A stretch of DNA of 53,739 nucleotides from Cyanophora paradoxa CCMP329 (Eukaryota > Plantae > Glaucophyta). The stretch spans positions 1 through 53,739 of the forward strand of contig QPMI01000299.1 in assembly GCA_004431415.1 (NCBI GenBank), written 5' to 3'. Shown piece after piece: positions 7,267 to 31,781 of this stretch. The notes under the pieces are model-generated. The model made no database searches, had not been told where the DNA came from, and saw only the letters and a list, made by a program, of their open reading frames with translations. Numbering within the stretch: the stretch's first letter is position 1; each line of letters begins with the position of its first letter. The translations under genes were made by a program, and so were the position numbers.

Positions 7267-8785
7267 TCACAACGAAAGGCTATTCCAAAATCGATCGTCC
7301 AGGGCACGCGGATCGCAGTCCTTCACGCTGATGGATACCAGCTGCGCGCCCAACGTGAGCTCCATTGTCGTGTCCAAATGGTGCTCAAAACCATACCCAA
7401 ACGTGCCTCGCGGGGCACGTTTGAGTATGATTTGGGCACGTCGGAGCATGGGGTTTGGGTATGACAGAGACGCACGTCGCCGACTGCAAGGTTGGCGATC
7501 TCCCCGGCTCTCTTGCGGGCGAAGTCAATCATCCTGTTCCTGTACGCCGAGAGACGATCGTTCAGGACCCCTACGTAAGCCTTGTACTTCTCGTGCTCCT
7601 TCTGCGGGAACAATGTCAGTGCCGACAGCCATTAACGTAAACAGGACATAGCGAACCATGAAAGCGATCGGCATCCCCTCGATGGTGCCACGACGGAAGC
7701 CGCCTTTGAGATGGCGCTCTGCGGAGTCCAAGTACTGCTCCGATTCCTTAGATTCCTCCTCCTCCATGTCCTTCACATACTTGTCCCAGAGGATCTGCTG
7801 CTTGTCGGTGGGCACCCAGCTGTCCCGGGCAGCTGCAGCCTCAACATCTTCGTCCGTGCCGACATCGACAGTGATTCCCGCATCCTGCACGACGGGCATG
7901 GGAGGGAGCAGCATCAAAGCGTTCAAGAAGGCCTAGGGAGGTGTGCACCTTCATGAGCTCCTGGAGCGTAGTGCCCTGCACGACCTCCCGCTCGTTGTAG
8001 ACACGATCAGAGGAGGCGGGAGCCAGGTTTCCGAATCGCTCGGACGGATCTCTGTTGAACATGACCTTGAAAGGCGTCTGCTTGTGCCCCTTGGTGAAGA
8101 TGGATGTGTTCATCTGCCACTGGACCTGTGCCTGGGTTGGTTGCAGGGCGCGAGCATGTCGGCACGGTCATACCGGGCCCAGGGCGGACACCCAGTCTTT
8201 CGTTCCGTTGAAGAAGCAGTACGCAGTGACTCGGCGGCCGAGCGTCCGGTTCGCGCGCTCCACAGAACCTGCAAAACACGGTCATACCCGAACATGCTCA
8301 AACATGCTCGGCACGTGCTCAAAAAGATCGTTGGGCACGATTGAGCATGATGTTGGGCATGTCGCGGGCATGACGCTGGGCGCTGCGCCGCCGTCCGAGC
8401 CGTCCGATTGCCGCTGGGTCGCAGCAGTTGGTGCCCTACGCTGCTCCGGAGGGACGACATACGCGCCAGGCGGCGGGCCAGCTGCTGCCGTGCTGTTCCC
8501 GCCACCATTGCTTGAACTGCTCGAAGGCCCCGCGCGTGCCTGCTGGAGCTGATCTAAGAGAGATCTAGCAAGATGCCCGCCAGGACAATGGCCGCGGTGG
8601 CCCTCCTTGTGATCGCAGTCGCAGCTCGAGAACGACGAGATCAGCTGCTCGATGTGGCAGGTACACTTGCGGCCGCACCACGCGCGACCCGCGAGCACAG
8701 CTGTCTGTAGCGCGAAGCTGCAGAAGACGCAGAACTGCAGAATCTGGCCGGCCGCCTGAATCTCCTCCGGCGACAGGCCCAACAT
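7267..8785 (-). pseudogene. Incomplete integrase/transposase gene of element 1: N-terminal Cys/His domain plus the C-terminal half of the DDE integrase (lacks HHCC and both catalytic Asp)
   Basis: ATG 8785 gives MLGLSPEE...FCVFC...WCGRKC...SCDCD...HRGHCPG. Exon 8268-8174 reads (G)SVERANRTLGRRVTAYCFFNGTKDWVSALGP, followed by VQWQMNTSIFTKGHKQTPFKVMFNRDP and LAVGD|LVSISV. These match the motif order of KRBA2/SCAND3/Ginger2-type integrases. Confidence 0.85.
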
Positions 8786-8916
8786 CGCTGCAGCTGTCTG
8801 GGCTCTAACACCTGTCGTGCCCAACACAAAGCTTACGTGCCCAAGCCTTTGGGCACGACGCGCCCTAGCCCCGACGTGCCCAAAGCGGATTTGGGCACGG
8901 GGCCCCGGCAATCATG

Positions 8917-8980
8917 TAATAGGCCCGTCCAACTCGATTCTGCTACGTGGTGCAAAAGGGTACGTAGTGGAGTGGCAACA
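8917..8980 (-). repeat. Right terminal inverted repeat of element 1 (64 bp)
   Basis: Reverse complement of 5689-5752, followed directly by the TSD CCTCC. Confidence 0.95.
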
Positions 8981-9061
8981 CCTCCGCGGCGTGGATCAGA
9001 CTGGGGTACAGCGCGCTCTTACACCAGAGGCCAGCGGCACCGCCGCGGTTCGCTTGCGGCC

Positions 9062-12000
9062 ATGTCGGGGTCTAAGGTTCAAGTCAGCAAGATGAACCTC
9101 GCTCAGTTGCCGGTAAAAATGCCGTCGAGGGCTAGCAAAGCTGCCGTCGCTGACCCCCTCGCCAGCTTTTCGATAGCGTGACCGCCGCTACTCCGGTCCC
9201 TGCTCCACCGGTCATGAAAGTAAGATGTGAGCGTGGGCCACCAGTTCCGCCTTTCAGAGCCGACCGACCGTGGTCGATGGGCCGCTGGCCCTGAGAGCCC
9301 AAGCTGACTCCGCCTCAGCTGTTGACGATGGACAGTGCTCGAATTGCAAGCAGCCGACCCCTCTCACGGCTTCGGTTCGTGCCCCACTGCCGCTCGACCT
9401 GATCGACGCGCACGTTACCGCCCGTCTCTCCGTTGCCCGGAGGCTGACCCCGCGGCGGGGCGTCCCCGGCGCAGATCGCACGCACCTACACCGAAGCAAA
9501 GGCACCACAGTGCGCCACTCGTCGAGCTTCGCGGCTCGCGGCGCGCTGACTGCGGCCGGCGCAGGATGGTCAACGCGCCGCCGCAGAAGGTCCTGGTGGC
9601 CCAGAACGGGGGCCCGGAGGTCAAATTCGCGGCGCCCAGCGCGCCCAAGGCGGTCGCCGTCCCGCCGGCGGAGATCAAGGTCTCCCAGGCCCCCGTCGTC
9701 GTCGAGAGTGCGCGCCCCGGGCCCCGCGCCGGGCGGCTGCGGCAGTGCTGACCGTGCGGCGCGCAGTGGACAAAATACCGACGTTCAAGCCGGTGAGACG
9801 ACCGGACGAAGCGCCGTGGGCCGCCCAGAGAGCCTCTTACTCGTGCCTCAGGGAATGATATCCACGTCGGTCAGCTTCACTCGGCCAGGGCTCAAGCCGA
9901 CGTACGAACCGAACCCCGTGACCAAGGTCAGCTGCGAAGCTGCGGGCGCGCCAGCGCGGGGAGGAGCTGCGAGCTCTGACGCGGGCGCGCAGGTGGAGCT
10001 GGGGAAGCCGGAGGTGGTGGTCAGCCCGCCGAACATCTCCGTCCGCGTGCCGGCCCTCGAGAAGCCCATCTCCATCCCCGTCCCGACGGACCCGCTGCTC
10101 GTCCGCGTTCCGGAGCCGGAGGTCTACTTCAAGCCGGCGGCGGAGAGCAGCGTGACGGCGCCGGCGACCGAGGTGGCGGTGCGCGCCGAGGCGCCCAAGG
10201 TGGCGGTGCCGCCGGCGCCGCAGCAGCGCGCCGTGGAGGTCCCCGCGCAGGACGTCCGCGTCCTCGTCCAGCAGGTGCCGTCGCCCCCGGCCCCTCTCTC
10301 CTCGGAGGCAGCAGCCGACGCCCTCGGCCTCGCGCGCGCAGCCGACGATGACGCACGTCGGCTTCGACAAGGCCGTCGACCTGCCGGGGCCGACGGTCCC
10401 TGTGAAAGTCACCCCGCAGGCGCCCCAAGTGACCTCGGGGCCCGCCAAGCCCGTCACCACGGCGCCCCTCCAGCCCATCACCGTCGACCTCGCCCAGCAG
10501 TGCGCCCGCCCCGCCCCGCCCGTTCTGCCGGGCCGGGGCCCGACCGCGGGGCAGGGCCGTGTACCTGCAGCTCCCCGAGAAGGCGACGAGCGCGGCGGCG
10601 CCGCCCCAGAAGCTCACCGTCACCCTTCCCGACGCCAACGTCTCCGTCCAAGGCCCCGGGCCCGCCGTCCCCGTCGAGCTCCCGCCCCAGAAGGTGCCCC
10701 CGCGCGCATTTCTGCCTTCCGTTGAATTTGAACGCGCATTTGAGCCCGGCGTGACGTTTCTTGTCACGGACAGGTCTTCGTCAAGGTGGCCCCCGTATCG
10801 GTCCAGGTCGACACGCCCAAGCCTGTCGACGTGCAGGTTCGATTCTTCCACGCCGTCGATTGTCCTCCCCCCGTCGGACTCGGCGAACGCGCACGGCAGA
10901 TCCCGGAAGTCCCGGTCCGCGTGCTGCCGGCCAAGGTCATCGTGGACGTGGCGCCCGTGGCGCGCCAGACGACCTACGAGCTCCCCGGTGCCCCCCGCGC
11001 CGGCCTCGCCGTCGCCCGCGTGACCGCCCCCTTTAGCCGAGGAGATCAAGCTCGACATCGACGAGCGCATCGTCAAGATCAACGTCCGCCCCGCCCCGGC
11101 CCGCCCCGCACCCCTGCCCGCCCCCTCCGACCCCGCCCGCAGAAGCCGCCCGTGCCGCTCGCCGTGAAAGGTGCCGTGCACGGTTGCGCCGTCGCTGCGC
11201 CCTCGCCCGCCCCTGACGCCCCGGCGCATAGTCGTGTACGGCTACCCGAAGGGCGCCCTCTGCGAGGCGAACGCGGGGCCCACGCCGCAGACCCCGGGGC
11301 CCGATGCCCCGTCCGGCTGCCCGAGCCTCCCCGGCCCCGACACGGTGCCCGCTGCGGCGCCCCCCGCGCGGGGCCGCTGGCCTGACGGGGGGAGGCGCAG
11401 AGCGACCCGAAGGCGGCCGGCTACGTCCTCCTCCGCGGCGGCGTCGAGCCGTCGCCCCGCCCCCGCCCCCGCCCCGGCCCCCGCGGTGAGGCCCCGCCCA
11501 AGCCCCCGAGCGCGCACCCCGGCAGGCGTAACGGGGCGAGCAGCCGGCGCCGGCGCCGGCGACGTGCGTGGCGCCAGGGGCGGCGCCGGCGGCGACGGTG
11601 ACGTACGTGCAGGCGCCGGCGGCCACGCCGGCCGTCACCGTCGTCTCCACGCCCGCCGTTGTCTCCGCCCCGCCCGGCCCCAGCTCCGGCACCCGCGCCC
11701 GCGCCGGCCCCGACCCCGGCACCCGCCCCGGCACCGGCGCCGGCTCCGACCCCGGCACCTGCCCCGGCGCCCGCCCCGACACAGGAGGCGAAGGTGACAC
11801 TCACGCCCACCACGCCGCCGGCCAAGGAGCCGGCCAAGGATCAGGCGGCGGATGAGGCGGCGAAGGCCAAGGCGGCAGCCGAGGCAAAGGCGAAGGCAGA
11901 GGCAGAAGCCAAGGCGAAGGCAGAGGCTGAGGCCAAGGCGAAGGCGGAGGCTGAGGCCAAGGCGAAGGCGGCAGCCGAGGCAAAGGCGAAGGCGGAGGCA

Positions 12001-12606
12001 GAAGCCAAGGCGAAGGCGGAGGCTGAGGCCAAGGCGAAGGCGGCAGCGGAGGCCAAGGCTAAGGCGGAGGCTGAGGCCAAGGCGAAGGCGGCAGCGGAGG
12101 CCAAGGCGAAGGCGGATGCGGAAGCGAAGGCGAAGGAGGGGGCGGGGAAGGAGGGGGCGGGGGAGACGAAGGTGGGGACGCTGTCCTCGAAGCCGGCAGC
12201 TGGTGCGGCGGCGGCGGAGGCACCCAAGTTCGGGCTAGAGCTGGTGGGTGCCCGTCTGAACTCGCTGCTGCCCGCTGGCCTCTGAATCATCGCTCCGCGT
12301 GCGTAGGACGACGACGCGCTGCTCGCATCCCCCGAGGCGCTCGAGGGGGAGGCCCCCGCCGTGCCCTACTCGGCCGCCCTCGCGGACGCCGACGCAGCTC
12401 CGGACGCCGTGCGCCCCGCCCCGGCCCCCGCGCCCGGCCCCGCCCCGCGCTCAGGGCCGGCCCCCGCGCAGGGCGAGGCGTGGGACGCGGCGGAGGGCAC
12501 GGACGTCGCCGGCGTCGAGGGGGAGCACGCCGCGGACGGGTACGGCCACTACGGCAACGCCGCCGACTACCACCCCGCCTTCTCCTTCTCGGACGGCCTC
12601 TACTGA
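9062..12606 (+). CDS. Val/Pro/Ala-rich low-complexity protein B with an AKAEAE helical repeat (articulin/epiplastin-like; paralog of 3686-5628)
   Basis: MSGSKVQVSKMNLAQLP|LFDSVTAATPVPAPPVMK|...MVNAPPQKVLVAQNGGPEVKF...VPPAEIKVSQAPVVVE. Also VELGKPEVVVSPPNISVRVPALEKPISIPVP and (AKAKAEAE)n. Ends YHPAFSFSDGLY*. Confidence 0.7.
11860..12135 (+). repeat. Coding tandem repeat, about 24-nt unit encoding AKAKA(E/A)AE
   Basis: Repeated GCCAAGGCGAAGGCGG(A/C)(G/A)GC(T/C/A/G)GA(G/A) units within gene B. Confidence 0.9.
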
Positions 12607-12874
12607 GCGCGCGCGCATCCCGCTTCGAATTCGGCGGCGTCTGCGCGCCCCTCGCATGCTGTACATGGCACGGGCTCGAGGCCCCTAGTGTGAAGCCCCG
12701 CTTTTTTTAGGTAGGTATGAACTCTTGTATCCATTCGCACGTTCAGCTATTTCCCGCGGCAGCAAGGCGGAAGGCAGGGGTCCGTTTCTGCAGGTTGTAT
12801 TGTACACGCGTGACACCCAGAAACGATGCATGGAGCCAGGGCCGGCTGGAAAAAGAGCAAAAAGCGAAGCGCTA

Positions 12875-14478
12875 TCAGCGGCTGGCGCTCCGATCACGGC
12901 GGCGGCTGCAGCGGGGTGAGGGGCGGGCGCGGGGGCCGGGGGAGGGGCGGGCGGGGCGGACCGGTCGCTGTCGCGGTCGTCGCGGCGGTCGCGGCGGTCG
13001 CGGTCGTCGTCGCGCGCCTTCTTCTTCGGCCGCTCCTCCTCGCTGCGCGCCGGCCGGCCTCACGACGCGCCCCGCGAGCACTGCGGCCGCCGCACCTGCT
13101 CGAGCCGCTCTCCGAGTCGGACGAGTCGCTCCCGCTGCTGCTCTCGCTCCCGCTGCTCTCGTCCTTCCGCCCCTTCTTCGACGAGCTGCCCCGCCGCTCC
13201 TCCTCTGCGCCCCCGTCAGCGCTTCGGGATGCACGGGCCTGCGAGCCGCGCACCCTCCTCGCGGCGGCTGCGCGGCGGCTCCCGCGGCTTCTCGCGCTCG
13301 CGGCGGTCGTCGTCGTCGCGGCGGCGCTCCTCGACGCGGCGGCGGTCGTCCCGGTCCTCGTCCCGGCGGCGGTCGTCCCGACCCCGGTCCTCCCGGTCAT
13401 CCCGGCGCCGATCGTCCGCCCGGCGGCGATCGTCGTCGTCCTTGCGCCGGTCACCGTCGTCGCGGACTGCGCGCCGCTCGTCGCGCTCGTCGCTCTCGCG
13501 CGGTTTGCGGCGGTCATCGTCATCCCGGCGGCGATCGCGGCTGCGCTCCGCTTCGCGCTCCTTCTCCCGCTCAATCTCCTTCGCTTTCTGACTCTCCTTC
13601 CGCTTCAGCTCCTTCACGCGCTCCTTCTCCCGGCGCTTCTCTTCCTTCTGCTCGCATGCGTCAGGTGTTGAGCTTGGGCAAGAAAGGAGCTTGACGCGAA
13701 CCCTGCGACGCTTCTCTTCCTTTGCCATCTCTTTCTCGCGGCGCTTCGCCTCGCGCTCCCTCCGGCGCTGCTCCTTCTCGCGTTGAAGACGCATCTCCTC
13801 TGCGATGCGCGCCTCCTCCTCAATCTGCAGCAGATCAGAGGCGAAAAGCTAGCCAAAGCTCGATCAAGAACGCGCACCTTCGCAAGACGCTCAAGGCGCT
13901 TCTGATCCTGCAGCTCGCGATTGAAGGCCTCCCCATCTTTGTGGCTGGATGTGATTCCGAACGCGGACGACAGTTTCTGCATCTCCTTCTCCTTCGCAGC
14001 AGCGATCGCGTGAGTCTCGTCCCTGGGTGGCGTGTCAGTGACCAACGAGAATGGAAGCGCGAGTTCATCTTGGGCGCACTTCCGCCGCTGGTCGATCGCC
14101 TCCACTGCGGCCTGTGCTGCACCTTCATCCATTAGCTTCTGACGAATCTCAGCGATCTTCTCCTCAATTTCCTCGTCCGTGTAGCTGGGTTGCGCGGGAG
14201 GCCCGCGTGTCAGCGACGGAGCGCGAGGGCAGGCGGGGGATTGCGTACTTGCGCTCCGCCATCGCATCCCGGAACTGAACGAGCTTCAGCTCGATCTGGC
14301 GCTTCCGCTCGTGGTCCAGGATATCCTTGTTGGGCTTCTTGGGCGGCGGAGGCGCCATAGCGAGCTGCTTCTGGAAGTCGTCCTGCTTCGGCCGCGAGCG
14401 AACGTGCGACAAGTTCCGCTGCACGTAGCCATTTGTGCCCGACCCACGCGGGGTGACCAGGCCGATGCCGTTGTACAT
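12875..14478 (-). CDS. CWC21: Pre-mRNA splicing factor CWC21 (SRRM2/cwf21 family) with RD/RS-rich tail
   Basis: Hallmark N-terminus MYNGIGLVTPRGSGTNGYVQRNLS. cwf21 domain NKDILDHERKRQIELKL...YTDEEIEEKIAEIRQKL, then ETHAIAAAKEKEMQKLSSAFGI...DGEAFNRELQ. Confidence 0.95.
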
Positions 14479-14602
14479 CTTTCCTCGAGCTTGCCCGCGC
14501 TTAGGGCGTCGGAGGCGATGTCTGGGCTTCGCGGAGGCCGAGCGAGAAGGAAGGTCAAGGTGAATTGCGTACCCCCGCAAGCGGTTGGTTTGGTTTGAAA
14601 TT
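14479..14602. promoter_or_regulatory. Compact bidirectional promoter between CWC21 and the FAM161-like gene
   Basis: Divergent ATGs are only 124 bp apart. Contains CGTACCCCC (reverse complement GGGGGTACG) at 14568-14576, a motif seen in other divergent intergenic gaps. Confidence 0.6.
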
Positions 14603-17600
14603 ATGTCGTCCCACGCGGTCCGGAACGGCGCGCGGGCGCCGTCGCCGGCGCCAGCGAGGCGAGGAGCAAGTCCAGCAGTCAGGGCAGCCAGCCCAGCGCC
14701 CCGGGCGCCAGTATACTCGGCCGCCGCCGCGGACGCAGCAGCTGCGCGCGCCGTGAAGGTGCACTTCGCCTCAAACACGCAGATGAATCCTGCTCCATTA
14801 CCAGCTACCCAGCCGGCAGCAGCTCCGCGCCCACCGAGCCCAAAGATTGCTCCTGCTCGAGCGTATGTGCCGACCCAGTCCCCGCTGGTTTCAGCTGCAG
14901 CTGCAAGAGGTTCGACACCAACTCCAGCTGGCAGGATCGCCACTCCCGCACAGCAGGCTGCAGCCGCCCCGAACGTGCGGCCTGCGAGCCCACAGAGGCA
15001 GGTCGTCGCGGCAGAGGCGCGGCCGCCGAGTCCTCCAAAGATCTCTGGTGATACCGTCAGCAAAGGCGCAACGATCTTCCACGCGAACCCTCGGGTGAAT
15101 CCGCACCCCGCTGCTCTCGAAGTCGCAGCTAAAGCTCGCGCAGGACCCGGCCTCTTACGACACGCGCGTGCTTCTGTACGGGGAGACGGGGCGCCCGACG
15201 ACCTCTAGCCTCCCTGGTCATGGATACGGCCAACCGTACGACGAATACGACGCTGGCGACGAGGATTACCTCGACTACGGCTATGGGGACGGATACCCGC
15301 GGGCACCGCAAAACCCGCGGGCTCCCGCACACAACGACAGAGAAACCGGTCAAGATGGATACTGGCGCGAACGCGGGGCGGGACGACCAGCCGGTCGGGC
15401 CGAGGAGCAGGCGTGGTACCAGGGGGAGCCCCGTCCGTACCGCGAGCACGGGGACTATCGCAATGCGGCGGCCCGTCCGGAGGGGCGTTCCAGCTACGAC
15501 GAGTACGAGGAGGACTACCTTGACTCGCGCCCTGGGGCCTCGCTACAGGCGATGCGCGATGCGGAGCGGGCGGCGCAGGAGCGGCTGGACGCGCTCGCGG
15601 AGAAGGAAGAGGCGCGGCGGCAGCGCGGCAAGCCCGTCACGGCCGTCGACGACCTCACTCAGGAGATTACTCGCCTGCGCGGTGAGCTCTTCTGTCCGAT
15701 GGCCGCTTATCCGAGCAGCCTCGTGACGGCCGCGCAGCCGAGTGCGAAAGCCTGGCCCGCAACCTCGGGGAGAACGAGAAGGGGGTCGTGAGCGCGCCGC
15801 GGCGGGAGGCGGGCCACCCGTACGCGGAGCCGGACCGTGTGGGGCAGGAGCGGCTGCTGGGCGAGCTCACGCGGATGCGGGAGGAGAACGCGGCGCGCCT
15901 CCAGGAGCTCGAGGCCCGCTACAGGGCCGCCCGCGGCGACGACAAGGCCGACAAGCCGCTCCGGTGCGCCCCGGCCTTGCCGCTCTGACAAGCCGATCCC
16001 CCGCGCATGCCCCTCCCGACGCGCCCCGCAGCTCCTCCCCGCCCCCGTACCACGGGCCGGCGCCGGCATGGGAGCCCCCGGTGCCCCGTGGGCAGCCCGC
16101 ATTCGCGCCCATGGCCCCGTTCTACGCGCCGCCTGCGCCGTACGCCGCGCCCCGGCCTGCGCACGGCCCGCCGGCGCCGCGGCACGGGGATTACCTCCCG
16201 TACCACCCGCCGCCGCGCCGCGAGCAGACGCCGTACTACGCTGCGCCGCCCCCCGGCCACCGGCCCGCGCCGCCCCCCGACGCGTACGGCCACCCCCAGG
16301 AGTACTCGCGCAGCCACGCCGCCGGCCCGCCGCGTGGCCACCATTCCCCGGCCCATCAGACGGGGCAGCCCCTCGGCCCGGCCCCCGAGCAGCTCCCTCC
16401 AGGCGAGCCGTCGCGCCAGCCGCCGCCGCCCGGGGTCGGCCCCGCGCCCATCAGCTGGCCCCCGGCCCCGCACCAGCTCAGGTCCAGCCAGCGCACGCTG
16501 GCGGGCCGCCCCAGGAGCGCGCCCCGCCCCAGGGGCCGGCGCCCCGCAGGCGGCAGGCAAGCCGCCCCGGGGCCCCTCTCCGGCGCGGGGGCCGGGCCCG
16601 GCGGGCCAGCCGCCGACGCCCGGGGCGGGCGGGCACCGGCGCCGCAGCGTGAGCTTCTCGGACGAGGACGAGTTCTTCCCGAGCGAGGGCGCCGGGGCGC
16701 CCGAGCGGCGGCGGCGGCCGCGGGGCACGACGCCGCCGGAGCACGGGGCGGCGGGGCAGATGAGGCCGGAGGAGCGGGAGCGGGCGGCCTTCGAGGGGGT
16801 GCACCGGGGTGCGGCGGGGCCGCCCCCGCCGGCGGCGGCGATGACGGAGGAGGAGGAGGAGGCGCTGCTCGAGGCCGAGGCCGAGGCGCTCCTGGACGCC
16901 GGGTACGCCTCCGACGGCGACATCCGCTACGACGGGCGAGGCGGGCCCTTCGCCCGCCCGCCCCCGCACCTCGCCCACGGCTACGAGTTCGGCCCGCCGG
17001 GAGCCTTCGAGGAGCTGCCGCCGCGGGGCATCACCCGCTCCGCGTCGCTCACTGACCTCTCCAAGGTGCGCGGCGCCGGGCGCCCCGCGGGGCGGCGCTG
17101 AGGCAGGCGGCAGGTGACGGCGCCGGAGGAGTTCGAGTTCATGAAGCGGGAGCGGCTGCGGGAGAGCCTCGGGGTGATGTCGATCGCCCAGGCCCGCTCC
17201 GCCGAGGACGCCCTCGAGCGCCACGCCGCCCTCGACCGCGAGCTCCGCACCCGGCCCCGCCCCTCGCCCCCGCCCCGCTCCACCTTCGGGCCCTCGTCCG
17301 CCCCGCCCCGCCCCGCCCCGCCCCGCGCCCCGCGTGACGCGGCGGCAGGTACATGGAGCGGGCGCGGCAGGAGGAGCGGGCGCGGCAGCAGCGGGTGACA
17401 GACCGCGCGGTGGACCAGCTCCTCGAGTCCGCCCCGCCCACCTGCTACGAGCCGCCCCACGTCGTCCGCGTGCGCCCCCCGCCGCCCGCCCCGTGCGCGG
17501 CCGCCGACGGCGCGCAGGCGAAGGGCAAGTCGGAGATGAAGGCGGTGGACGAGGCGGCGCTCTTCCGGGCCCGGCCGATCCCGACGGACGTGCGCCGCAC

Positions 17601-19610: not shown

Positions 19611-22591
19611 ATGACAGAAGAGCCGACAGAGGGCGAGATGGCCCCGCCGTTGCAGCCCGTCTGGGCGCGCGAGCAGTGGAACACCCTCACACACGACCCG
19701 GAACTGCCCCGCCCTCCCAGGCCACGGGACTGGAGGGGGGACGATGTGACTGCTTTCCTCCTTTCGACGAAGCATTTAATGAAGAAGGTGTGAGGATCGC
19801 CTGGGTTCCGCCGCGCTACTCTCAACATGTGCGCAGACTCGGCCACCAGACACACTTCAGATCCTGAGGCACCAGCGCGTGCTGCACAGCACCGGCGTCT
19901 ATGCCCCCCCTGGGTACGCACGGCCTGCGCTATTCGACCGGCGCCTCTCAAGGGCGCGCAGAAAACCGTACGCGGCGCTCGGCGGTGCCCCTGACTTCAC
20001 GCTCTCCGGTGCGACGCGCCCCGCGGGGCTGCGGCGTGCAGCCGATCTGCGCGAGCGCAGGCCACGTCTACAACAAGTTCTTCCCAGGCGAGGGGCGCCG
20101 GCGGCCCGCCGCCGCCCGCCGCTGACGCGCCGCGCAGACCCGCTCTCGCCGACGGGGTACTCGACGCCGGGCTTCCCCGCGGACAACTTCAACAGCGGGC
20201 AGGGCCAGGACATCTGGGGCACGGTGCGGGGGACGGGCCGGGGCCGGGGCGGGGGGCCGGGGCGAGGCGGGGCGCAGGGGAAGGACTCGATGGCGGAGGA
20301 GGAGCGGGCGATGGCGCGGCGGAAGCGGGAGAAGCTGAAGCGGGCGCTGCAGCGCAAGGCCGCCCTCGGCCTCCCCGTCGCCCCCGCCCTCGCCGAGCTC
20401 CACCCGTGCCCCGCCCCGCCCCGCCCCGCCCCGCCCCGCCCCGGCCGGCGGCGAGGTGCGGGGCAGGAAGAAGAAGACGGAGGGGGCGGAGGAGGAGGCA
20501 AGCAGCTCGTCGAGCGACGCGGCGACGAGCCACCGCTACTCCATCGCCCCCTCCATGCAGGCCGCCGGCCCCGACGCCGTCAACGTCTCCTACTCCCACT
20601 GTGCCCGCCCCGCCCCGCCCCGCCCCGCCCCGCGGCCGACGGGGGCGGGCGCTGGGCAGCGAAGCGGGTGCACCGGTTCCCGAAGCGGCTGACGGCGGCG
20701 TCGCACGAGCGGGTGGCGAAGAGCAAGGCCGGCCAGCGCCTCGTCGACCTCCTCCCCGGCGCCCCCCGCCCCGCCGGCCCACCCTCGACCCCGCCCCTTC
20801 AGCGGCCCCGCCGGCCTCGGTCCGGCCGCCCCGCCCCGCCCACCCGTCCCCGCCACGCGGCCCCACGGGGGCTGACGTGTGCGCGGCAGAGCCCTCCGTC
20901 GTCCGGCAGGCCGTTGAGTCGAGGCGAGGCCTCCCCCGCCGCGGCCGGCGTCGGCGGCTGACGCCGGGTCGCGCAGGCTGCAGGAGCTGGTGCCGGCGCC
21001 GGCGGCGGAGGAGCAGGTCCCGGTGGGGAAGCGCACGAGCTTGCTCCTGCCCGGCGGCGCCGGGGCCGGGGCCGGGGGGACGGGGAGCGGAGCGTGGCGG
21101 GCCTGGTGGGGGCGGTCGCCTCGGCGCTCTCGCTCATCGCGGGGGCCGGCGGCGAGGAACGGCCCCGCCCGGGCCTCCCTCCGCCAACCCCTCCACCGCC
21201 CGCTCCATGCGCCGCCGCCGCGTGCGCCCGCCCGCGCGGGGCCGGGGGGCGTGCGGGGGCGGGGCCGAGGGGCCGGGGCGCAGCGGCGGAGGAAGGACGG
21301 GCTGGACGGGATCTTCGGGGAGGGGTTCGGGGGCGGGGAGCCCGGGGAGGCCCTCGCCTCCCTCCTCGAGGCCCTCCAGAGCTCCGCCCCCACCTCCTCT
21401 CCCACCGCTCCGACGTCCGCCCCGCCCCGCCCCGCCCCGCGCCCCGCCCGACCCCGCGCAGGCGAGCGTCGAGACGATCCCGGACCCGCCGCCCGTCGAG
21501 GAGAAGGTCGAGGTCGACCCGCACGCCGGCGAGACCCTCGTCCGCCCGGCCCCGGCCCCCGCCCGCCCCGCCCGCCCCGGCGGCGCCGCTGAGGGCGGGG
21601 GGGCAGCCGGAGAAGCACCGGCGGGAGTTCGAGGAGGGGCGGGAGGAGCTGCAGCGGCGGGAGCTCTCGCGGATGGAGCAGCACGTGCGCAAGCGCGGCG
21701 CCCTGCTGCGCTCGCCCGACTACGCGAGCGGCCTCCTCCACGAGCTCGAGGCCCGCAAGACCCGCCCCGACCTCTACTCCCACTCCCTCTGGCCCGCCCC
21801 CCCGCCCCGCCCCGCCCCGCCCCGCCCCGCCCCGCGGGGGGCGAGCCGGGGGCGCAGGGAGGAGGCGGCGGAGGCGGAGGCGGAGGCGCGGCGGGGGGAG
21901 ACGATCCGGGAGCGGCAGGAGTTCTTCGAGAAGCTGCTGGACTGGATCGAGCTGGCGGGGGACGGGGCGCCGCCGGCCCGCGAGCACGCGGCGATCGCGC
22001 ACGCCGTCAAGTGGCTCCTCGAGCACGGCGCCGGCGTGGACGAGGGCCTCTTCTTCGGGGCCCTCCGCCTCCTCGGGCCCGAGGCCTGCGCCGACGAGGC
22101 CGTCCTCCGCGTCGTCAACCAGGCCCGCCCCGCCCCGCCCCCCGCCCCGCCCCCGGCCCCTCACGCGCCGCCAGATGCGCGTCGAGCTCGGCGTCGACCT
22201 CGGCGCCCTCGCCGACTGGCTCAAGCGCGAGGCCTGGGGCGAGAAGGCCCGCGCCCGCTCCGCCCACGCCCCCGCCCCGGCCCCGCCTCCTCCCCTCCTC
22301 CCCGGCCCGCAGCCGCGAGCGCGGGGCCGCCTCCCGCCAGGGCCCCTCCCCGGCGCCGCGGACCCCGCGGGGACGCGGGCGCTCCTCGCCTCGGCGTCGG
22401 CCCCCGCGCTGCCGGGGCGGGCGGGGCCCTCGCCGGGGCAGTCCCCCGGGAAGGCGGCGGGGGCGATCCTGCAGCCGTACCGCTCGCGGGCGATGCACTC
22501 GACGGTGCCCCTCTCCTCCTCGGGCGAGCTCGAGAAGGCCCTCGCCGCCCTCAACGCCCCGCCCCGCGCCCGCCGCCTCGCGCCCCTCTAG
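19611..22591 (+). CDS. Hypothetical multi-exon protein, function unknown
   Basis: Starts MTEEPTEGEMAPPLQPVWAREQW.... Coding-like exons include GKDSMAEEERAMARRKREKLKR and ERQEFFEKLLDWIEL...AVKWLLEHGAGVDEGLFFGALRLL, separated by typical CCCCG-rich introns. Stop at 22589-22591. Confidence 0.65.
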
Positions 22592-22708
22592 CCCCCCGCC
22601 CCGCCCCGCCCCGCCGCCCCGCACCCCCCCCGCCCCCGTGTCGCTCGAATCCGGATCCGCACGCGAGCTCGAGGACACTGGAACTGCAGACGGGTCGGGG
22701 CTGGGGGC

Positions 22709-23959
22709 CTACTCGGTGGGGACGCAGCCGAAGAAGTGGAAGACCTCCTCGCGGTCGTACACGCCGATCTCCGTCCCGCACGCCGCGCACTCCACCTGCC
22801 CCCGCCCCGCCCCTCACGCCCCCGCCACGCCCCGCCCCCAGCCCCCGCGCAGGCGCACCGGGTGGTAGACCTCCTCCTGCGGCTCCTCGCGCTGCGCCGC
22901 GCCCCCGCCGCGCCCTCGCCGCCCGCCCCGCCGCCCGCCCCGCCGCCCGCCGCCGCCCCTCGCCTGCGCCGGCGCCTCCTCCTCGTCCATCGGGTCGGGG
23001 AGGATGTTCGCCCACTCGGAGGCGCCTGCCCCGCCAGCCCCCGCCGCCGCCGCTGCTGCTGCCGCCGCCAACGACTCTGCGTAGGCCTGCTCCGACGGCC
23101 CCGCCCCGTCGCTGCCGCCCGCCGCCGCCGCCGTCCCGCCGGCCGCCTGCGCCCTGGCCTGCTCGGCCCGCTCGAGCTTGGCCTTGTGCTCGGCGAAGCC
23201 CGGCGGGGGCCGGCTCGTGTCCGCCGCCTCGTGCCCGCGCGCGAGGCTCGCCGGCGGCTCCGCCATCCCGGGGTCCGAGTCCCCGTCCTCCTCGTCGTCG
23301 AACTCGTCGTCCCCGCCCTTCCCCTTCTTCCCTTTCCGCCTGCGCGCCGGCTCAGCGCAGCGGCGAGGCCGCCCGGCCGCGCGCCGCACCTGTTGCGCTT
23401 CTTCTTGTCCTTGCCGGGCGCGTAGCGGAGCACCTCCCCCATGATCACTTTCACGTTCTGCGCGAAGACCGCCCGGAACTGATTGTGGTACCGTGTGTGC
23501 CTGCAGGGCCCGGACGAGTGGAGGTTGGCGACGACCACGGAATCATCGCGTGCAGGGCAGCGCACCGCTGACACTGGTAGCAGACAGTTGTAAAGCAACA
23601 CGGGCAGCTTAGGATGGCGTCCGTCTGTCCGCCGCGAGTGAGTATACGCGCTGCAGCCGCTGTCGGAGACGCCGGCGCCGCGAGCGCCCGGCACCTTGCT
23701 TTCCGCTCGGGTCTTCGACAGGCGCTTGTTCACCCACCGCTCGTCGACGTCGTCCGCTTCTGCGCGTCACAGTGAGCGCGCGACTCCGTCTGCGTCGGGC
23801 GGGGCACGAACGGGGATCGTAAAAGGGGTCCGCCTCCATGCGCGCATCCTCACCGGCGTCATCGCTGTCTTTACCATCGTCCGATAGCGTATCGGCGCCG
23901 AGCTCGCGGTCGGGCTCGGTCGGCAGCCCAAGGTCGTCGATCTGCTTCGCACGGGGCAT
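22709..23959 (-). CDS. EAPP: E2F-associated phosphoprotein homolog (Eapp_C domain)
   Basis: FYDP|EADDVDERWV, TDAILSCPCCFTTVCYQCQR|HTRYHNQFRAVF and EEVYHP|VECAACGTEIGVYDREEVFHFF match the EAPP consensus. Confidence 0.9.
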
Positions 23960-24268
23960 CGTTGCGCTCTGCGATCTTCTCCTGCGCCGTGCGAGTCGTC
24001 GCTCGAAGCGCCGCTCTCTGCGCTGCTCGCTGCGCTGCGCACTCCTGGTGGGGGTATCGCCAACAGCGCTTCGGCGATCAGACTTCAGGCTTTTCGAGAG
24101 CTAGGGTGATTTTAACCTGCAAACGCACCACAACATTCGCTCGTCGTTCCCGACCGCTCATACCAAACGTTCCGATCAGCAGCGGCGAGGCGTACACGTC
24201 AGCCCGCGCCCGCGCTCCTCCGCCCGCGCGGTTGCGGTGCTGATAGGCGAGCTCCAGCTTAGCTACAG

Positions 24269-26294
24269 ATGGCACAGCGCGATTCGAAGCGCGCGAAGAT
24301 CAAAGAGGAGTCCCCTGCGGTGCGCTGACACCTCGGACTGCGGTCGCGAGCCCAGCGTTGACGCCACCGCTTGGCTGCAGGGCTCTGGCAGTCAAACGGG
24401 TCTCTCCGAGGTGATCGACATGTCGATCGCTAAGCAGATCCTGAAGATGGACGACCCGGATGTGAAGGAGGGCTGGGACGACGTTCCGAGCGGTGCGCCT
24501 GCCTGCACCAGCCCCCGCCGCCTGCTGGTCCGCTCGAGCGCTGACTCGAGCGCTGACGGCCGCGCAGATTTGGAGGACCCGGAGTCGTACGTGGACGCGA
24601 TGTACGAGGAGGCCGTGCGCGGCGCCGCCGAAGACAGCGACGACGAGGGCGACGCCCCGAAGCTCAGGCCCGGCGACAACGTCTCGCAGGCGCGCACTCC
24701 GCGCGCGGCGCCGGGCGGGCGCGCGCCGATGCGGGGCGGCAGTTCATGGAGAACAGCAAGACGAACCCGTACGACGAGAAGAACGCGCTGGGCCTGTTCA
24801 TCAAGCTCGACGGGGACGGCAAGCGGCAGTGGATCGGGCCCAACGGCGAGACGATGTCGCGCAAGCAGTGGAAGAAGCTCAGGAAGCGCCTGAAGGGGTC
24901 CGGCGTCGCGCCGGCCCTCCGAGCGCGGCGGCGGTGACGCTGCGGGCAGGGAGCAGGCGATGAAGGAGAAGAAGGCGGCGCGGAAGAAGCAGGTGGAGGA
25001 GCGGCGGCTGGCGCGCGAGCAGCGGCTCAAGGAGGAGTGCGTGGCCGGCGCGGGGCGGGGCGGGGCGGGGCGGGGCCGACGGGGCGGCAGGCTGGAGGCG
25101 ATGACGCCGGAGGAGCGGCAGACGTACATCGAGATGAAGATGGCCGAGGTCGCCCGGCTCAAGGCGCGCCGCCCCCGGGCACCGCCGGCGCGCCCCTCCG
25201 CGCCCGCGGCGAGCCGGCTGGGCGGGGCGGCAGGCGGAGAAGGCTGCCCAGAAGAAGGAGCTGGAGGCGCGGATGCAGGGCGGGCACCGCATCGTCTTCG
25301 ACCTCGAGTTCGAGGCCCGGCGGGACCCTTCCCTCCTCTCGCCCCCGCCGGGCGGCGGGGCCGAGCGGGGCGCAGGAGCTGATGAACGAGCGGGAGCTGA
25401 AGAGCCTGGCGCAGCAGATCATGTACTCGTACGGCGTCAACGTGCGCTCCTCGAAGCCCTTCCGCATCGTCCTCACCTCCCTCAAGGGCCAGGTCCCGCC
25501 CCGCCCCGCCCCGGGCCCCGCGCGCCCCCGGCCGACGCGCGGCGGGGGGCAGACGCTGGAGCAGATGTGCAAGGTGCACGGCTTCCTCTCCTGGTCCCTC
25601 GCCCGCCACGACGCGCCCTACATCGAGGTGCCCGGGGCCGGCGCCGGGGGCGGGGCGAGGCGGGGCGGGGCCTCGAGGGGGCGGGCGGGGGCGGGCCAGG
25701 TGTTCGGTAAGGAGGAGCTGGTGTACCTGACCGCCGACTCCCACAACGTCATCGAGGAGCTCGACCCCGCCAAGGCCCGCCCCGCCCCGCCCCGCCCCGC
25801 CCCGCCCGCAGCGGCGCTCACCGCCCCGCAGGTCTACATCGTCGGAGGCATCGTCGACCACAACCGCAACCCCGTGCGGCCCGCGCGGTCGCCAGTGGGG
25901 GCCGGCGGGGCGGGGGCGACGGTGCGCGCAGAAGCTGACGTTCAACAAGGCGGTGAAGCAGGGGATCGCGCACGCGCGGCTGCCCCTCGAGAGGCACGTC
26001 CAGCTGCAGACCACCAAGGTCCTCCTCCTCCAGGAGGTGCCCGCCCCGCCCCGCACAGCGCCCGCCCGCCCGACGAGCGGGGGCGCGGCAGGTCTTCACG
26101 ATCCTGAAGGAGTTCGACTGCACGGGGGACTGGGCCGGCGCCATCATGAAGGCCCTCCCCGAGCGCAAGGCGAGCCGCCCGGCGCCATCCCCCTCCGCAC
26201 CCCGGCCACACCGCCCCAAGCCGTAAGCGTGACGCCCTTCGCCGCGCAGACGGAGGGCATCGAGGGCGGCTCCAGCTCCAAACAGCTGCAGTAG
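24269..26294 (+). CDS. TRM10: tRNA (guanine-N1, position 9) methyltransferase Trm10 family
   Basis: RIVFDLEFE|ELMNERELKSLAQQIMYSYGVN, LVYLTADSHNVIEELDPAK|VYIVGGIVDHNR and GIAHARLPL. 13 introns inferred. Confidence 0.93.
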
Positions 26295-27305
26295 CTATAG
26301 TCCCCCCATCATGATCCCGCTGCATGCGCAGCTGCAGCCGCTGAGCTGTGCACGGCGCCCCGGCCGGCGCCTCGGCGAGCTGTATATGCCCCCCCAGCCC
26401 CAGTATTTATCGCGGCCATCATGGTGCCCATGTGCAATGCCATGATGTACTTCGAGAAACATGCAGGCTGCAGACAGAACGTCTACAAGCTAGACGGATC
26501 TCAACTTTGGGGCTCCAGTTCGTGGGATTGGACCACGAGTGGCGCCCAGCCCGCCATCCACCGCCGGAGCAGCTTCGGTCGGCCGAGCACGGAAAGGCCC
26601 CCTTGAGGGAGGGAGTACTCCCCCCCCGGCACCTAGGTGGAGTGCCGAAGATTGCAGCACCGGTGGATCGGGAGGCGACGGCCCGCCGCGGGCGGAAAGT
26701 GCCCGCAGGGGGGAGCCTGCGCACGGCGGCGGCGCGCGCGAGGTCAGGTCACGCGCACGCGCAGGATTTGATCTCGAGATCGAGACAAGCTTCGCACCCG
26801 AGACGGCGCCACGGGAGGTGGCGCGCTGCTGAACTCGAAGCGCTGCTGAGCGCGGCCCGAGCTGCACGCGACGCGCCCGCGCGAATATTACTGCGCGGGA
26901 ATATTAATGCGTGCGCGCGCGCGGGAGAGGCTCGAGCTCACGCTGCTACGGGAGCGCCAGGGTTGCCGCGGCGCTGCTTCGAATTCGACGAGCTCATGCG
27001 CGGAGAAGCGCACCCTTGAGAGGCGATCGAGAGCGCGCCCGGCCCGTAATTGAGCGCGCGCCGAGAGCGCCTGCCGCAGCAGCGGAAGTAAGACAAGGTG
27101 CATTTAAGGCGCCGCACGCGTATATTGCACCTTCGCCCCGGCCGCGCGTTGCCGCGCGACCACGCCTGGTGGCGATTTACCGATCAGGTTCGGTGGCAAT
27201 GACGCCAAACACCGTCTCTTGGACCCTTTTATACTGGGACCTAGAGAGAACTTTAATACGTACACTAGTACTTTAAGAGACCTTAAGCTTTCTAGAGAGG
27301 CACTG

Positions 27306-27418
27306 AGTTGCACCTCTAATACATGTACTCCCGTGCCACGTAGCAGAAAGAGGTCGCGGAGTTCTAATTCATGATCGGCTCGGGCCGTGTCCCAGTCCCC
27401 CCTCCGGACACGGGGGCG
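27306..27418 (+). repeat. Left terminal inverted repeat of element 2
   Basis: (A)GTTGCACCTCTAATACATGTACTCCCGTGCCACGTAGCAGAAAGAGG...GGACACGGGGGCG matches the reverse complement of 31901-32012. Confidence 0.93.
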
Positions 27419-27487
27419 ATGGCGGAGCTCGTGTCCCACAATAGTTAGAGACTGAACCTGTTGCTCCGTGTCCAGTAGCCGTGTCCG

Positions 27488-29905
27488 ATGGCGGGAGCGC
27501 CGGAGCCTCCGCCTGCGCCGGCGCCGGAACAGCCGCTTGTAGTGTGGACACTTAACTTGTTTGTGCACACCAGCATCCAAAACGTAGACGAATTCGGCGG
27601 CGATCCGAAGATTCCCTGCAGCGTGATGCCCTTCCACGGCCGCCTGCCGGACACCATGCAGCCTGTGCTAGACGAGCTGAAGGACATCAAAGCTCTAGCA
27701 GCGGACGTGAAGGATGAATCGGGCATACGATTCTACCAGGCGCTGCCGCCAAAGCACGGGCAGCCGCCATTTCACAGGCTCCCCTTCAATGTGCGTCGGA
27801 ATCCTGCCCGCGCGCGCTTCGCGCTGCGCGCTCGCCAGCAGTTGAGGCTGCGCTGCGCATCCGCAGCGTCCGAGATGGCTTGCGACCGGCGATCCAAGGC
27901 TGCCCGAGTACTACAGGCTCAGCGTCGTCTGCACGCCTAACGGCGCCGATGCGCCGAGCCCGGACCTGGACTACTTTGGCCTTCCGAAAGAGGTGCGCAT
28001 GCGAGCGCGCGCCCGTTCTCAAACTGCCCGCGACCGGCTTCGCGCAGGAGGCCCCCAGGCCTATCGCGATAGCGCCCCAGCCAGCAGCGCCGGCGGCACC
28101 GGCGGCGCCAGCTGCAGCGTCGGCAGCAGAGGAGTCGGAGGAGGAGGGAACTGGAAAGCGGCGCAAGCCGGATGAACCCTACAAGCGCATGCTCACGGTG
28201 CTGGACAAGAAAGGCATCTTCCAGGGGATGCCCGTCGACAAGGTGGTGGAAACGGTGCGAGCAGTGCACGGGGCACGGGCCGGACACGGGGACACGGGGG
28301 GACACGAGCGCGAGCACTAGTCGGGACACGAGCAGGGCGCGATGGGACACGGCTCATGCTTTCCGCAGGTTATGGGGCACCCGGTCGGCGGCGGAGACGG
28401 GAACAAGCGAGATCTGAATGGAGCATGTGCTGTCCCCTTCCGCATGGCGTACGGGGGCAAAGAGTCCGGCCTCCCCGTGCACGGAAGCAACAAGACGGTC
28501 CTAAGGAGGATCGCGAGCTCGTACGTGCTTCTTCCTGCACAGTTTTGCTGCAGATCCTCCAGATCCCGACTCACGGCGTCGGCAGTCTGCAGATCCTCCA
28601 GAACCCGGCGGTGGAGGCGAAGGACATCCCAGAGCGAATTGCTGCTCTGTACACGGCGGGGAGGAAGAAGAAATATGACGCAGCAGAGGAGGCCGGGAAA
28701 AACGACAAGGAGAAGCTGACCGAGGACAAGAAGAAGCTCCTGGCGGGGAGGACGATCGGCGAGCTGAAGGACAAGGAGCAGAAGAAGGTCGAGGCCATTG
28801 ACAAGAAGCTGAAGACTATCAATCGCGAAATCGCGAAACGGCGGAAGAGGTATCTTGAAGCCAAGCGGGCCGCGAACATCTGGCGAGTCGTCATCACTGG
28901 CTCAGACTCCCCCTTCCTTGTTCACACTGCTGGGTCAGAACCTGCTTATTCACTGCCACATGACGTGATTCGCTGCTAATAGCGGGATTTGCAGCGAGAC
29001 TTGGCTATCGAACATCTCAGCCTTGAAGAAACAAGCAGCGAATGCTCCTCTCAAGAAAGGTTCGTGCTAGCACGAAGAGAGCTATCCAATCTCATACATC
29101 AGAGCGATACCGGATGTCATGCGTCGCCCCGCAGGAGCCGCAGGAGAAGCCCCGTCCTCCTCAGAAGACGAGGAATCTGCAGAGGACGAGGAGTCAGGCA
29201 GGGAGGAGGAGGAAGAGGCGCGGGACGAGGCGCCGGCACAGGCGGCCCGCAAGAAGAGCGGGTGCGCTTGTCGTGTCCGGTTCCGTGCTCGGACATGGCA
29301 CGGACACGAGACTTCGATGTCTCGTGTCCGTGCCATGTCCTGCATGGACACGGACGAACCACGGACGCAGTTTTCGCCGTGTCCCGTCCATGTCCGTCAT
29401 GTCCCAAACCGCGTACTGACGGGAGCCGGTTTTTTTCTGCAGGGGCAAGAGGGGCGTTCCGCAGGCGCCGCCTCCCCCCGCCAAGACGATGCCAGCTGGG
29501 CATCTGCATGCGAAGCCGCAGGGCAAGGCGTCGGCTGTGAAGCCGCCTGCCAAGGCTTCGACTAAGAAGTGCGTCAGGGTAACATGTTCTGTGATCGCAA
29601 TTGCCATGTAATTCTGACACGTGCACTCCACGCATTCAGGGGCGATCAGCCGGAGCCGAAGAATTCGAAGAAGGACAAGGAGGAGAAGGTGAGCAAGAAG
29701 ACGTCGAAAGAGGATAACAACAAGGGCAAGAAAGCTTCTCGTTCTGGTCCACATTTCCCCCCGCGTGCATCGGCAATTTCAATAACAGAACCGGCCAGGA
29801 GATGGGGATGAGGCCGATACGGAGTCGGCGAAGCCGGGACCGAGTATGAAGCGCAAGGCCGAGAAGGACGAGAACGAGGAGGACGCGGGAGGCGCCAAGA
29901 CGTAG
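27488..29905 (+). CDS. Hypothetical spliced cargo protein inside element 2 (globular N-terminus, Lys/Glu-rich coiled-coil C-terminus; may be frameshifted)
   Basis: MAGAPEPPP...VVWTLNLFVHTSIQNVDEFGGDPKIPC...FN|RPRWLATGDPRLPEYYRLSVVC...PKE|EAPRP...YKRMLTVLDKKGIFQG, then ILQNPAVEAKDIPERIAALY...KKVEAIDKKLKTINREIAKRRKRY. Ends ...EEDAGGAKT* at 29903-29905. The frame could not be closed across about 28370-28520. Confidence 0.5.
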
Positions 29906-29971
29906 GCGACCGTGTCCCAGTGGAGGGACACGAGCGGGACACGGGTCGGACACGGTCAGGGCATGGCGCAC

Positions 29972-31781
29972 CCTGGTGCCATGGGTGGTATGGCGTGCCC
30001 GTGATGATTACGATTTGGCGCCCCGTTACGCGCTCCCACTCCATGCAAGTGGCCCGCACGACCTGACTGAACAATGAGAATTGCAGATCTTCAAATTCTA
30101 CAAGCAACCTATTCTTCGCGCTGCGCCTCGAGTACACTTGCCGTGTTCACGAACTCTGACCCGTTGTCGTGATGCAAGACTTGGGGGACGCCCATGATTC
30201 GGAAGATCTCGACCAGCTCCTGGGCCACGCAGAACGCGCTCTTCCACTCCAGAGGACGGAGAATGCTGAAGCGCGAGAAATGGTCCTGCGCACTGCGATG
30301 TCAGGAGCAAGTCATGATCCTGTAAGGGAGTTGGATGACACGCACACGAACATGAAGAACGTAGCGGTACTGGCGCTCGGGGTCCTCGACCCACTCGACA
30401 TCCTCACCGGTGTAGGCAAGGTTGTCTGCGTCCTGGGGACGCTTCGGATGCTTCGGAGCAAGGTATGGCATGGGCATCTTGCTGAAGTCCTTCAGGTCGA
30501 TGAAGACACGGGACCAGGCCGACTTGGCGATGATGGGCTTCAGTCCCGCTCGCTTCGCGGCCATCTCGCTCTTCTTGGTGGTGAGGCAGTACGGGCAGCG
30601 CTGGGGGGAGGCTCCCGGTCAATTCAGCGCCTGAAATGATTGCGAGCCGCACGCACGGCGCAGAAAGTATCGATGTACTTGTCCAAGATGTCGTACGAAC
30701 GAGAGATCTTGTACTTCACCGTGCCCGCCGCCTCGTGCGCCACGTTGTGGTAGTCCTGCGGGCGGGGACACGGATCGGACATGGATGGACACGGCGGGGC
30801 ACGGGTAGGGACACGAGTGCGCACGGAGATAATTTCGAAGACCTCCTGGGCGTTCCTCGGAAGGATGCGCACGTCTTTCGGTGCCGTGGCAGCGTCTCCA
30901 CCAGACTTGTTCTTGGCACGCTTCGCGGGGACCTTCGTCTCCTGCATCACGAGCACGTGCCCTTCGCCGTCCGGGTTGGGGTGCTCCGCCAGCGTGTACT
31001 TCTCCAGACGCCGGGCGCGGCGCCCGTCGTCCCTCTTCCGAAGCCGCCGGGCTGCAGCCGCGTCCTCTTCAGCAGCTTCAGCCGCGTCCGCGTCCTCGCC
31101 AGCTGCAGCTTCGGCTGCCGCTGGATCCGGACGCTGCTTGCGCTTCTCCTTCGGGGGCTTCCCCTTCAGCTTCGCGTGGCCGCGCGCCTTACACTCCGGC
31201 TTGTTTGCGTCCAGCTCCTTCATCTTCTCCTTGTTCTTCGCCGCGACCGCCGCCTTCCTCTCGCGATCCCACATCAGCACTGCGTATATGTCGGTCTGGT
31301 CGAGCTCCTCCTCGATGTTGCACGCATGCACGACGCTGAGGTCGTTCACGAACGCGTCGTACGTCAGGCGCATCGTGTACCGCTTGCTGGTAGTCGACGT
31401 GCGATCGGGAGCGGCCCCATATCGCGACGGGCGCCCCGGCCCGGCTACGAATTCGCTGCCCTCCTCTTCATCGGCTGCGTTTGCTGCTGGCTGAGTCGCA
31501 TTCGATGGCGCCGGAGGTGCCCGGCGCTCTGCCGGCGGGACGACATAGGCGCCAGGCAGAGGCCCGCTCGCGCTAGCGCTAGCGCTGCGGGACGCCGCAG
31601 CTGCGGCGCCGCTTCCGCTGGTACCAGGACAGTGCCCGCGATGGGCGTTGCGCGGATCGCACTGGCAGCTAGTGTACGTCTGCTGCACCTGCCGACCCTG
31701 CTCGCATGCCCCGCACCAGGTCTTACTGGCGAGCCGCATGAAGACATCTTGCTCTGCGCTGCAGTACGCGCAACGAGACAT
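29972..31781 (-). pseudogene. Incomplete integrase/transposase gene of element 2: N-terminal Cys/His domain, HHCC zinc finger and both catalytic Asp; lacks the catalytic-Glu exon and C-terminus
   Basis: MSRCAYC...WCGAC...SCQCD...HRGHCPG, then EIIS|DYHNVAH...TFCA|RCPYC, LKPIIAKSAWSRVFIDLKDF, YRYVLHVR|DHFSRFSILRPL...GVPQVLHHDNGSEFVNT|VV...GTPYHPWHQG|. No stops or frameshifts up to the donor at 29971. Confidence 0.9.

Follow-up and report, generated by a model that had tools for sequence, protein, structure and literature searches.

Two internally deleted transposons of sister families probably account for a seemingly split integrase gene in Cyanophora paradoxa

Transposases related to retroviral integrases have been described in several kinds of DNA element bounded by terminal inverted repeats (TIRs), among them Ginger1, GingerRoot and Polinton/Maverick (PMC2836005, PMC6839031). 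The Ginger2/TDD elements, described in 2010, have TIRs of 50-180 bp with TGTNR ends, generate target-site duplications (TSDs) of 4-5 bp, and encode an integrase-like transposase with H2C2 and DDE motifs in a gene that contains introns (PMC2836005). Two elements of this general kind lie in a 53,739-nt stretch of DNA from the glaucophyte Cyanophora paradoxa CCMP329 (contig QPMI01000299.1, positions 1 to 53,739; hereafter the window). Both are read on the minus strand, element 1 at 5689-8980 and element 2 at 27307-32011, and each of them holds a different part of an integrase gene. In the original prediction for this DNA, the two parts were seen to join in frame at one intron, and two explanations were offered: a bipartite system whose transposase is rebuilt from both elements, or independent deletions that both broke in this intron. 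The second is the better one; with a probability of about 85%, the halves belong to two distinct non-autonomous copies, each with an internal deletion, from two sister families of cut-and-paste DNA transposons with an integrase-type transposase, residing in the nuclear genome of C. paradoxa.

By their architecture, the two families are Ginger2/TDD-like. Element 1 (3.3 kb) has the ends TGTTGCC...GGCAACA, and self-comparison gives it TIRs of 64 nt that are 100% identical; for element 2 (4.7 kb), a copy without the 3′ part of the integrase gene, the same comparison gives TIRs that are 99% identical over 112 nt or 100% identical over 98 nt. Both lengths fall within the 50-180 bp of Ginger2/TDD. 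TGTTG stands at both ends of element 1 and at the 5′ end of element 2, which reads TGTTGCACC; the 3′ end of element 2 matches from the second base, its outermost base being mismatched. A 5-bp TSD, GGAGG in the minus-strand reading, was found around element 1 (8981-8985, with the second copy at 5684-5688) both by direct reading and by alignment of the ends; the flanks of element 2 do not match each other. The gene is interrupted by spliceosomal introns, and the gene model P0016, which belongs to the element-2 family, matches the Pfam families Integrase_H2C2 (2e-3) and rve (1.3e-5), both below the gathering score. Unlike Ginger2/TDD, as far as a comparison with the published description goes, the elements in the window have an extra Cys/His-rich N-terminal module followed by a long charged linker, a convergent second gene, and arrays of subterminal motifs inside introns, and their host is a glaucophyte. 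The other integrase-type elements do not fit. First, Ginger1 has 4-bp TSDs of CCGG/CCGT, YPYY and GPY/F motifs, and OTU/Ulp1 protease domains, none of which was seen here; for the two motifs this refers to the exon translations, in which the last exon of element 1 may be incomplete. Second, GingerRoot has TSDs of 6-8 bp, which were not seen either. Third, Polintons are 15-20 kb long and have a DNA polymerase, 6-bp TSDs and AG...TC ends, again without a counterpart here. Readings of the two elements as long terminal repeat retrotransposons or as Polintons were rejected on account of the inverted orientation of the repeats, the element size of 3-5 kb, and the absence of both reverse transcriptase and polymerase.

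Deletion derivatives such as Ds from Ac, dSpm, KP and other deleted P elements keep the ends of the parental transposon and have lost an internal part of the transposase at one junction. Breakpoints differ among copies of this type, the junctions show short microhomology, and transposase is supplied in trans. Element 1 resembles them in being colinear with longer models of its own family except at one internal junction; for element 2 the likeness is inferred only. What differs from Ds, dSpm and KP is that one breakpoint lies in the same homologous intron in two families, and for this reason the leftovers look complementary.

The translated exons of the window give 100% matches to EukProt gene models of Cyanophora paradoxa (EP00741), and the window is nuclear DNA of this glaucophyte, not human DNA; its introns are short and of the GT-AG type. 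The names of these models share the contig_gene style of the published assembly, in which introns average 86 bp and intergenic distances 770 bp (PMC6704402). Other copies of the two families are known here as predicted proteins, the automatic gene models P0001 and P0016-P0019, and not as DNA; P0001 and P0017-P0019 derive from contigs other than the window. The protein searches covered gene models of up to 628 amino acids, and spliced genes were searched against Pfam and PDB exon by exon.

The deletion in element 1 can be read off from such copies. Its integrase gene starts with an ATG at 8785 and continues as a 137-codon remnant of exon 1 (8375-8785, minus strand), which encodes the Cys/His-rich N-terminal module. 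This remnant is 35% identical to exon 1 of element 2 (E 1e-15), the stretch PGAYVVPP and the Cys/His-rich module being common to both, and its match to P0017 (202 amino acids) and P0019 (493 amino acids) is perfect, with 100% identity over residues 1-137 of both. Since these two models match up to residue 137 and then run on past the point where element 1 breaks, element 1 is seen to be derived by an internal deletion, whose only junction lies at 8375|8374, where codon 137 meets the first bases of intron 5. These bases were recognized as such from element 2 (GTGCGC followed by CATGCCC). The retained intron 5 (8269-8374, minus strand) consists of CATGCCC/CGTGCCC motif copies together with inverted copies and ends at a phase-1 acceptor (...TTTTGCAG|GT at 8269|8268). 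Exons 6-10 follow at 8268-8174, 8125-7949, 7884-7657, 7601-7476 and 7341-7267, the last of them closed by a stop codon, with open frames and GT/AG boundaries; exon 10 is short and may be incomplete. The original prediction had described this acceptor, the want of a strong donor upstream of it and the open C-terminal exons, and all three hold. Upstream of the acceptor, the only nearby donor-like GT (8374, at the junction) is in phase 0, and none of the phase-1 GTs farther upstream is consensus-like, so that the start codon of element 1 has no good route to its C-terminal exons.

Element 2 retains the N-terminal part. Its integrase exons 1-5, delimited by translation and splice boundaries, lie at 31781-30825, 30755-30657, 30600-30346, 30285-30142 and 30062-29972 (minus strand) and encode the N-terminal module, HHCC, and the two Asp residues in FIDLKD and HHDNGSEF. 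Their boundaries consist of GTGCG-type donors, one GC donor and CAG acceptors, and the junctions of exons 1-4 are reproduced by the independent gene model P0016. Intron 4 (30063-30141, minus strand) is a GC-AG intron with the donor GCAAGT; P0016 reads through it to a stop, which leaves the annotated protein truncated. The open frame was predicted to run through HHCC and both Asp residues to a phase-1 donor, and the coordinates and frames hold: exon 5 ends with ...HPWHQ and one G, the donor GTGCGC follows at 29972|29971, and the first AG on the minus strand comes 226 nt downstream, at 29745. Only 66 nt (29906-29971) separate this donor from the stop codon (29903-29905) of a convergent gene on the plus strand. 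This deletion junction zone, or intron 5 remnant, consists of the donor and four GGACACG-type motif copies. When the elements were compared by tblastx with each other and with the whole window, the homology found was N-terminal only, and nothing similar to exons 6-10 of element 1 was found in element 2 or in the remaining window. The homologous interval of element 1 (7267-6652) is intergenic, measures about 610 bp and contains two motif arrays. On the simplest reading, the deletion in element 2 would begin within intron 5 and reach as far as the 3′ end of its convergent gene. The 66-nt gap was absent from the original prediction, as were the 137 N-terminal codons of element 1 and the convergent gene in each element.

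That the two elements belong to two sister families is evident from their sequences. Their TIRs align, with the TGTTGC end and the core CCACGTAGCAGAA common to both, and this core occurs only at the four element ends. The proteins of the two families are 35-44% identical, the comparison of P0019 from the element-1 family with P0016 from the element-2 family giving 44% (E 2e-44). In sister families, a phase-1 intron that splits HP..QG | SVER is expected on both sides, and the halves fit in frame because one homologous phase-1 intron occupies the same position in both; with position and phase shared, any copy truncated there will fit in frame with any copy that starts there. The main value of the case is a negative one, namely that complementary-looking halves arise trivially where sister families share an intron position. 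As for the motif HPxxxGxxER, which had been recognized across the joined halves, the in-frame match of the phases stands, and the catalytic Glu is assigned by motif only, the exon-wise searches having come back blank.

From the union of the copies, the layout of a complete gene can be proposed. Exon 1 would encode the Cys/His-rich N-terminal module and the long charged linker, exon 2 the His-His pair, exon 3 the Cys-Cys pair and the first Asp, and exon 4 the second Asp; exon 5 would end in HP..QG, and after the phase-1 intron exon 6 would supply SVER, with the presumed Glu, followed by four C-terminal exons. Of such a gene, element 1 has lost codon 138 and all that follows it up to the point where intron 5 begins, and element 2 would have lost everything between a point within intron 5 and the stop codon of its convergent gene. 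Both would be mobilized in trans by autonomous copies elsewhere, and hairpin-forming motif arrays in the introns would favor breaks at these sites.

The bipartite explanation takes the same fit as functional: the N-half of element 2 (HHCC, Asp, Asp) and the C-half of element 1 (Glu, C-terminal domain) would be reunited either at the RNA level, through trans-splicing or through cis-splicing across 21.7 kb, or at the protein level, through the association of two polypeptides. A phase-1 donor and a phase-1 acceptor that recreate HP..QG-SVER in frame are what it calls for; both parts are moreover on the same strand and in transcriptional order, the near-perfect TIRs of both elements speak for recent movement, and a complete gene was not found in the protein databases searched. 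However, the element-1 family has an N-half of its own in P0017 and P0019, and element 1 itself keeps 137 N-terminal codons that end at a plain deletion junction and, with a phase-0 GT there, cannot be carried in frame into exon 6. The two families share only the protein identity given above, and their end motifs differ (GGGACACG in element 2 versus TTGGGCACG in element 1). We know of no precedent for an RNase-H-like core split in such a way that two Asp residues are on one chain and the Glu on another. The transcript would also have to run antisense through the convergent gene of element 2, and an intron of 21.7 kb would be about 250 times the genome mean (86 bp; PMC6704402). A transposase rebuilt from two different elements would be the first of its kind, and the evidence makes it very unlikely. 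Since the near-identical TIRs mark both copies as young, their open exons say little about function.

Two independent deletions are also what the remaining copies point to. P0017 and P0019 continue beyond codon 137, and P0019 extends to the end of exon 1, through the His-His exon and on to the Cys-Cys motif, so the family of element 1 is not a "C-half" class; the division of copies into N-half and C-half classes that the bipartite idea had suggested is contradicted by P0019. Codon 51 is the last that P0018 shares with the family 1 frame, whereas P0019 departs from this frame only after the Cys-Cys motif. In the family of element 2, P0001 corresponds to 31373-30804 of the window joined directly to 28256-28182. 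It was rejected as a spliced model of this window, as no GT-AG or GC-AG intron can join 30804 to 28256; most likely, it represents one more copy of family 2, from which 2.55 kb were deleted and in which a 3-nt microhomology (ACC) marks the junction. As these models tell it, breakpoints differ among copies. Varying breakpoints, which had been set beforehand as speaking against a split gene, are thus seen in P0001, P0018 and P0019. The prediction had itself leaned toward independent deletions on the grounds that the two TIR families are diverged; the extra copies are a stronger argument than this divergence. Beyond the points at which they leave the family 1 frame, P0018 (residues 52-161) and P0019 (residues about 365-493) both enter one and the same Cys-rich (CXC-like) segment, of which the window has no copy. 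It may represent a further portion of the complete element, a fragment captured from the host, or an artefact of prediction.

Five points weigh against an origin by two independent deletions. First, both elements broke in the same intron, and pure chance gives that only a few percent of the time. Second, the deletion in element 2 is deduced from what element 1 and other integrases would lead one to expect, and no longer family 2 copy stands behind it. Third, P0001, P0018 and P0019 are automatic gene models, in which some of the odd junctions could be prediction errors. Fourth, a full-length (autonomous) copy of either family was not found among the predicted proteins searched (up to 628 amino acids). 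Fifth, exon-wise Pfam and PDB searches with exons 6-10 of element 1 gave no match to integrases.

The first of these points would lose force if the deletions were not random. End-motif arrays inside introns are the more unusual feature of these elements and may mark deletion hotspots. The motifs are specific to each family: all 13 copies of GGGACACG in the window lie inside element 2, and 14 of the 15 copies of TGGGCACG lie inside element 1. In each element they cluster in both subterminal regions and in particular introns. In element 2, arrays are located in integrase introns 1 and 5 and in two introns of the plus-strand gene (28282-28351 and 29272-29404); in element 1, they are located in integrase introns 5 and 9 and in the intergenic region. 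Integrase intron 1 of element 2 (30756-30824, minus strand) consists almost entirely of CGTGTCC copies and contains the left breakpoint of the P0001 deletion. A near-perfect palindrome of 25+25 nt made of the element 2 motif is found at 29291-29340, within the array at 29265-29405 in an intron of the plus-strand gene.

Hairpin-forming arrays of this kind could act as sites of breakage or template switching, for example during gap repair after excision or during replication, with intron 5 as a recurrent site; such a mechanism would refine the explanation by independent deletions and, under it, the truncated HHCC-Asp-Asp protein of element 2 may serve as a regulator. Besides the concentration of family-specific motifs within the elements and their clustering near the ends and in particular introns, the folding of the arrays as DNA suggests it. 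The hairpin in the retained intron 5 of element 1 starts from the first base of the intron, that is, exactly at the junction (-24.4 kcal/mol, z -4.6), and the folds of intron 9 of element 1 (z -4.8) and of the array at 29265-29405 in element 2 (-48 kcal/mol, z -8.3) are likewise stronger than expected. In addition, one breakpoint of the P0001 deletion falls within the intron-1 array and the second is 25 nt away from a different array, and only 11% of the element is that near to a motif copy. Were the arrays hotspots, it would be less surprising that both families broke in one intron. On the other side, only three deletions have been sampled, the left breakpoint of element 1 lies in plain exon sequence, and neither the intron 1 array nor the intron 5 remnant of element 2 folds better than shuffled sequences; both the binding of the motifs by transposase and the production of truncated proteins are hypothetical. 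We regard this refinement as possible, if on the doubtful side. A stronger version, in which the intron arrays are functional internal sites for transposase binding or breakage that would autoregulate the gene or program recurrent deletions at fixed introns, seems rather unlikely; the motif in the intron arrays does change together with the end motif between the sister families. If true, it would repeatedly yield truncated HHCC-Asp-Asp proteins and complementary-looking derivatives, and the coincidence of the two breaks would be designed fragility and not luck.

One may also ask whether the truncations are artefacts of assembly or annotation, produced by mis-joined long reads in repeat-rich DNA. 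The region is indeed very rich in GC (0.56-0.81 in 2-kb windows) and in repeats, and the flanks of element 2 show no clean TSD. Against such an artefact, each element has both TIRs in the correct orientation and at near-perfect identity, element 1 has a perfect 5-bp TSD, and the parts that remain are matched at 100% by independent gene models of other contigs. We consider this source of error extremely unlikely. Outside element 2, a perfect 17-nt direct repeat, GGGACCTAGAGAGAACT, is found at 27236-27252 and 32023-32039, 55 nt beyond the 3′ end and 12 nt beyond the 5′ end, respectively, and the AT-richer flanks at 27253-27306 and 32012-32041 look like diverged copies of one unit of about 30 nt. 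Element 2 may have inserted into a local repeat, or the site may have been rearranged afterwards.

The enzyme encoded by the two families is, as judged from the parts preserved here, of the retroviral integrase type. Among solved structures, the best match of P0016 is prototype foamy virus (PFV) integrase (PDB 3L2Q and related entries; E 1e-6): the N-terminal extension aligns, HHCC is placed on the zinc site, and FIDLKD and HHDNGSEF are placed on the first two catalytic Asp residues. It differs in that its identity to P0016 is low and in that element 2 does not encode a third catalytic residue. Exon 5 of element 2 gave no match in Pfam and PDB searches. On the side of element 1, exons 6-10 are presumed to belong to the integrase by motif and context. 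Exon 6 (8268-8174) encodes SVERANRTL, in which we take the Glu of SVER to be the catalytic one on the strength of the integrase motif, and the exon after it presumably corresponds to the post-Glu segment of retroviral-type integrases, which it resembles.

In both families the integrase is preceded by a conserved Cys/His-rich N-terminal module (C-x2-C ... W-C-G ... C-x-C-D ... H-R-G-H-C-P-G), encoded at 8785-8600 and 31781-31630 (minus strand). It has no match in Pfam and may be the domain that recognizes the family motifs by sequence-specific DNA binding. Relatives outside Cyanophora were sought in three ways. A HMMER search with exon 3 against 1.84 billion representative sequences gave only spurious matches to repeat proteins (TPR-like and tandem repeats), a word-indexed search of 5.8 billion proteins with the core of P0016 gave none, and scans of viral and metagenome contigs gave none. 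The elements represent an integrase-type TIR transposon lineage in a glaucophyte whose true relatives were not found in the very large protein collections searched, and which carries, besides the integrase, an extra zinc-type module at the N-terminus and a second gene.

This second gene is convergent to the integrase gene and lies on the plus strand in both elements. In element 1 it is small and spliced (5952-6652), and in element 2 it has multiple exons and a Lys/Glu-rich tail (27488-29905); frame analysis delimited both, and neither matches a Pfam family. The two convergent genes show no detectable similarity to each other. Element 1 is flanked, at a distance of 0.6-1 kb, by an inverted repeat of about 100 nt (5026-5123 and 9987-10084, about 80% identity), which looks like a pair of paralogous coding segments and not like transposon ends. 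In the DNA between the two elements, Pfam searches with ten long open reading frames gave nothing usable, and a screen of the window for GC content at third codon positions did not reliably delimit host genes. The same DNA contains GC-rich, diverged repeats in tandem or dispersed arrangement, at 11820-12143 and 20360-21890, with identities of 75-83%.

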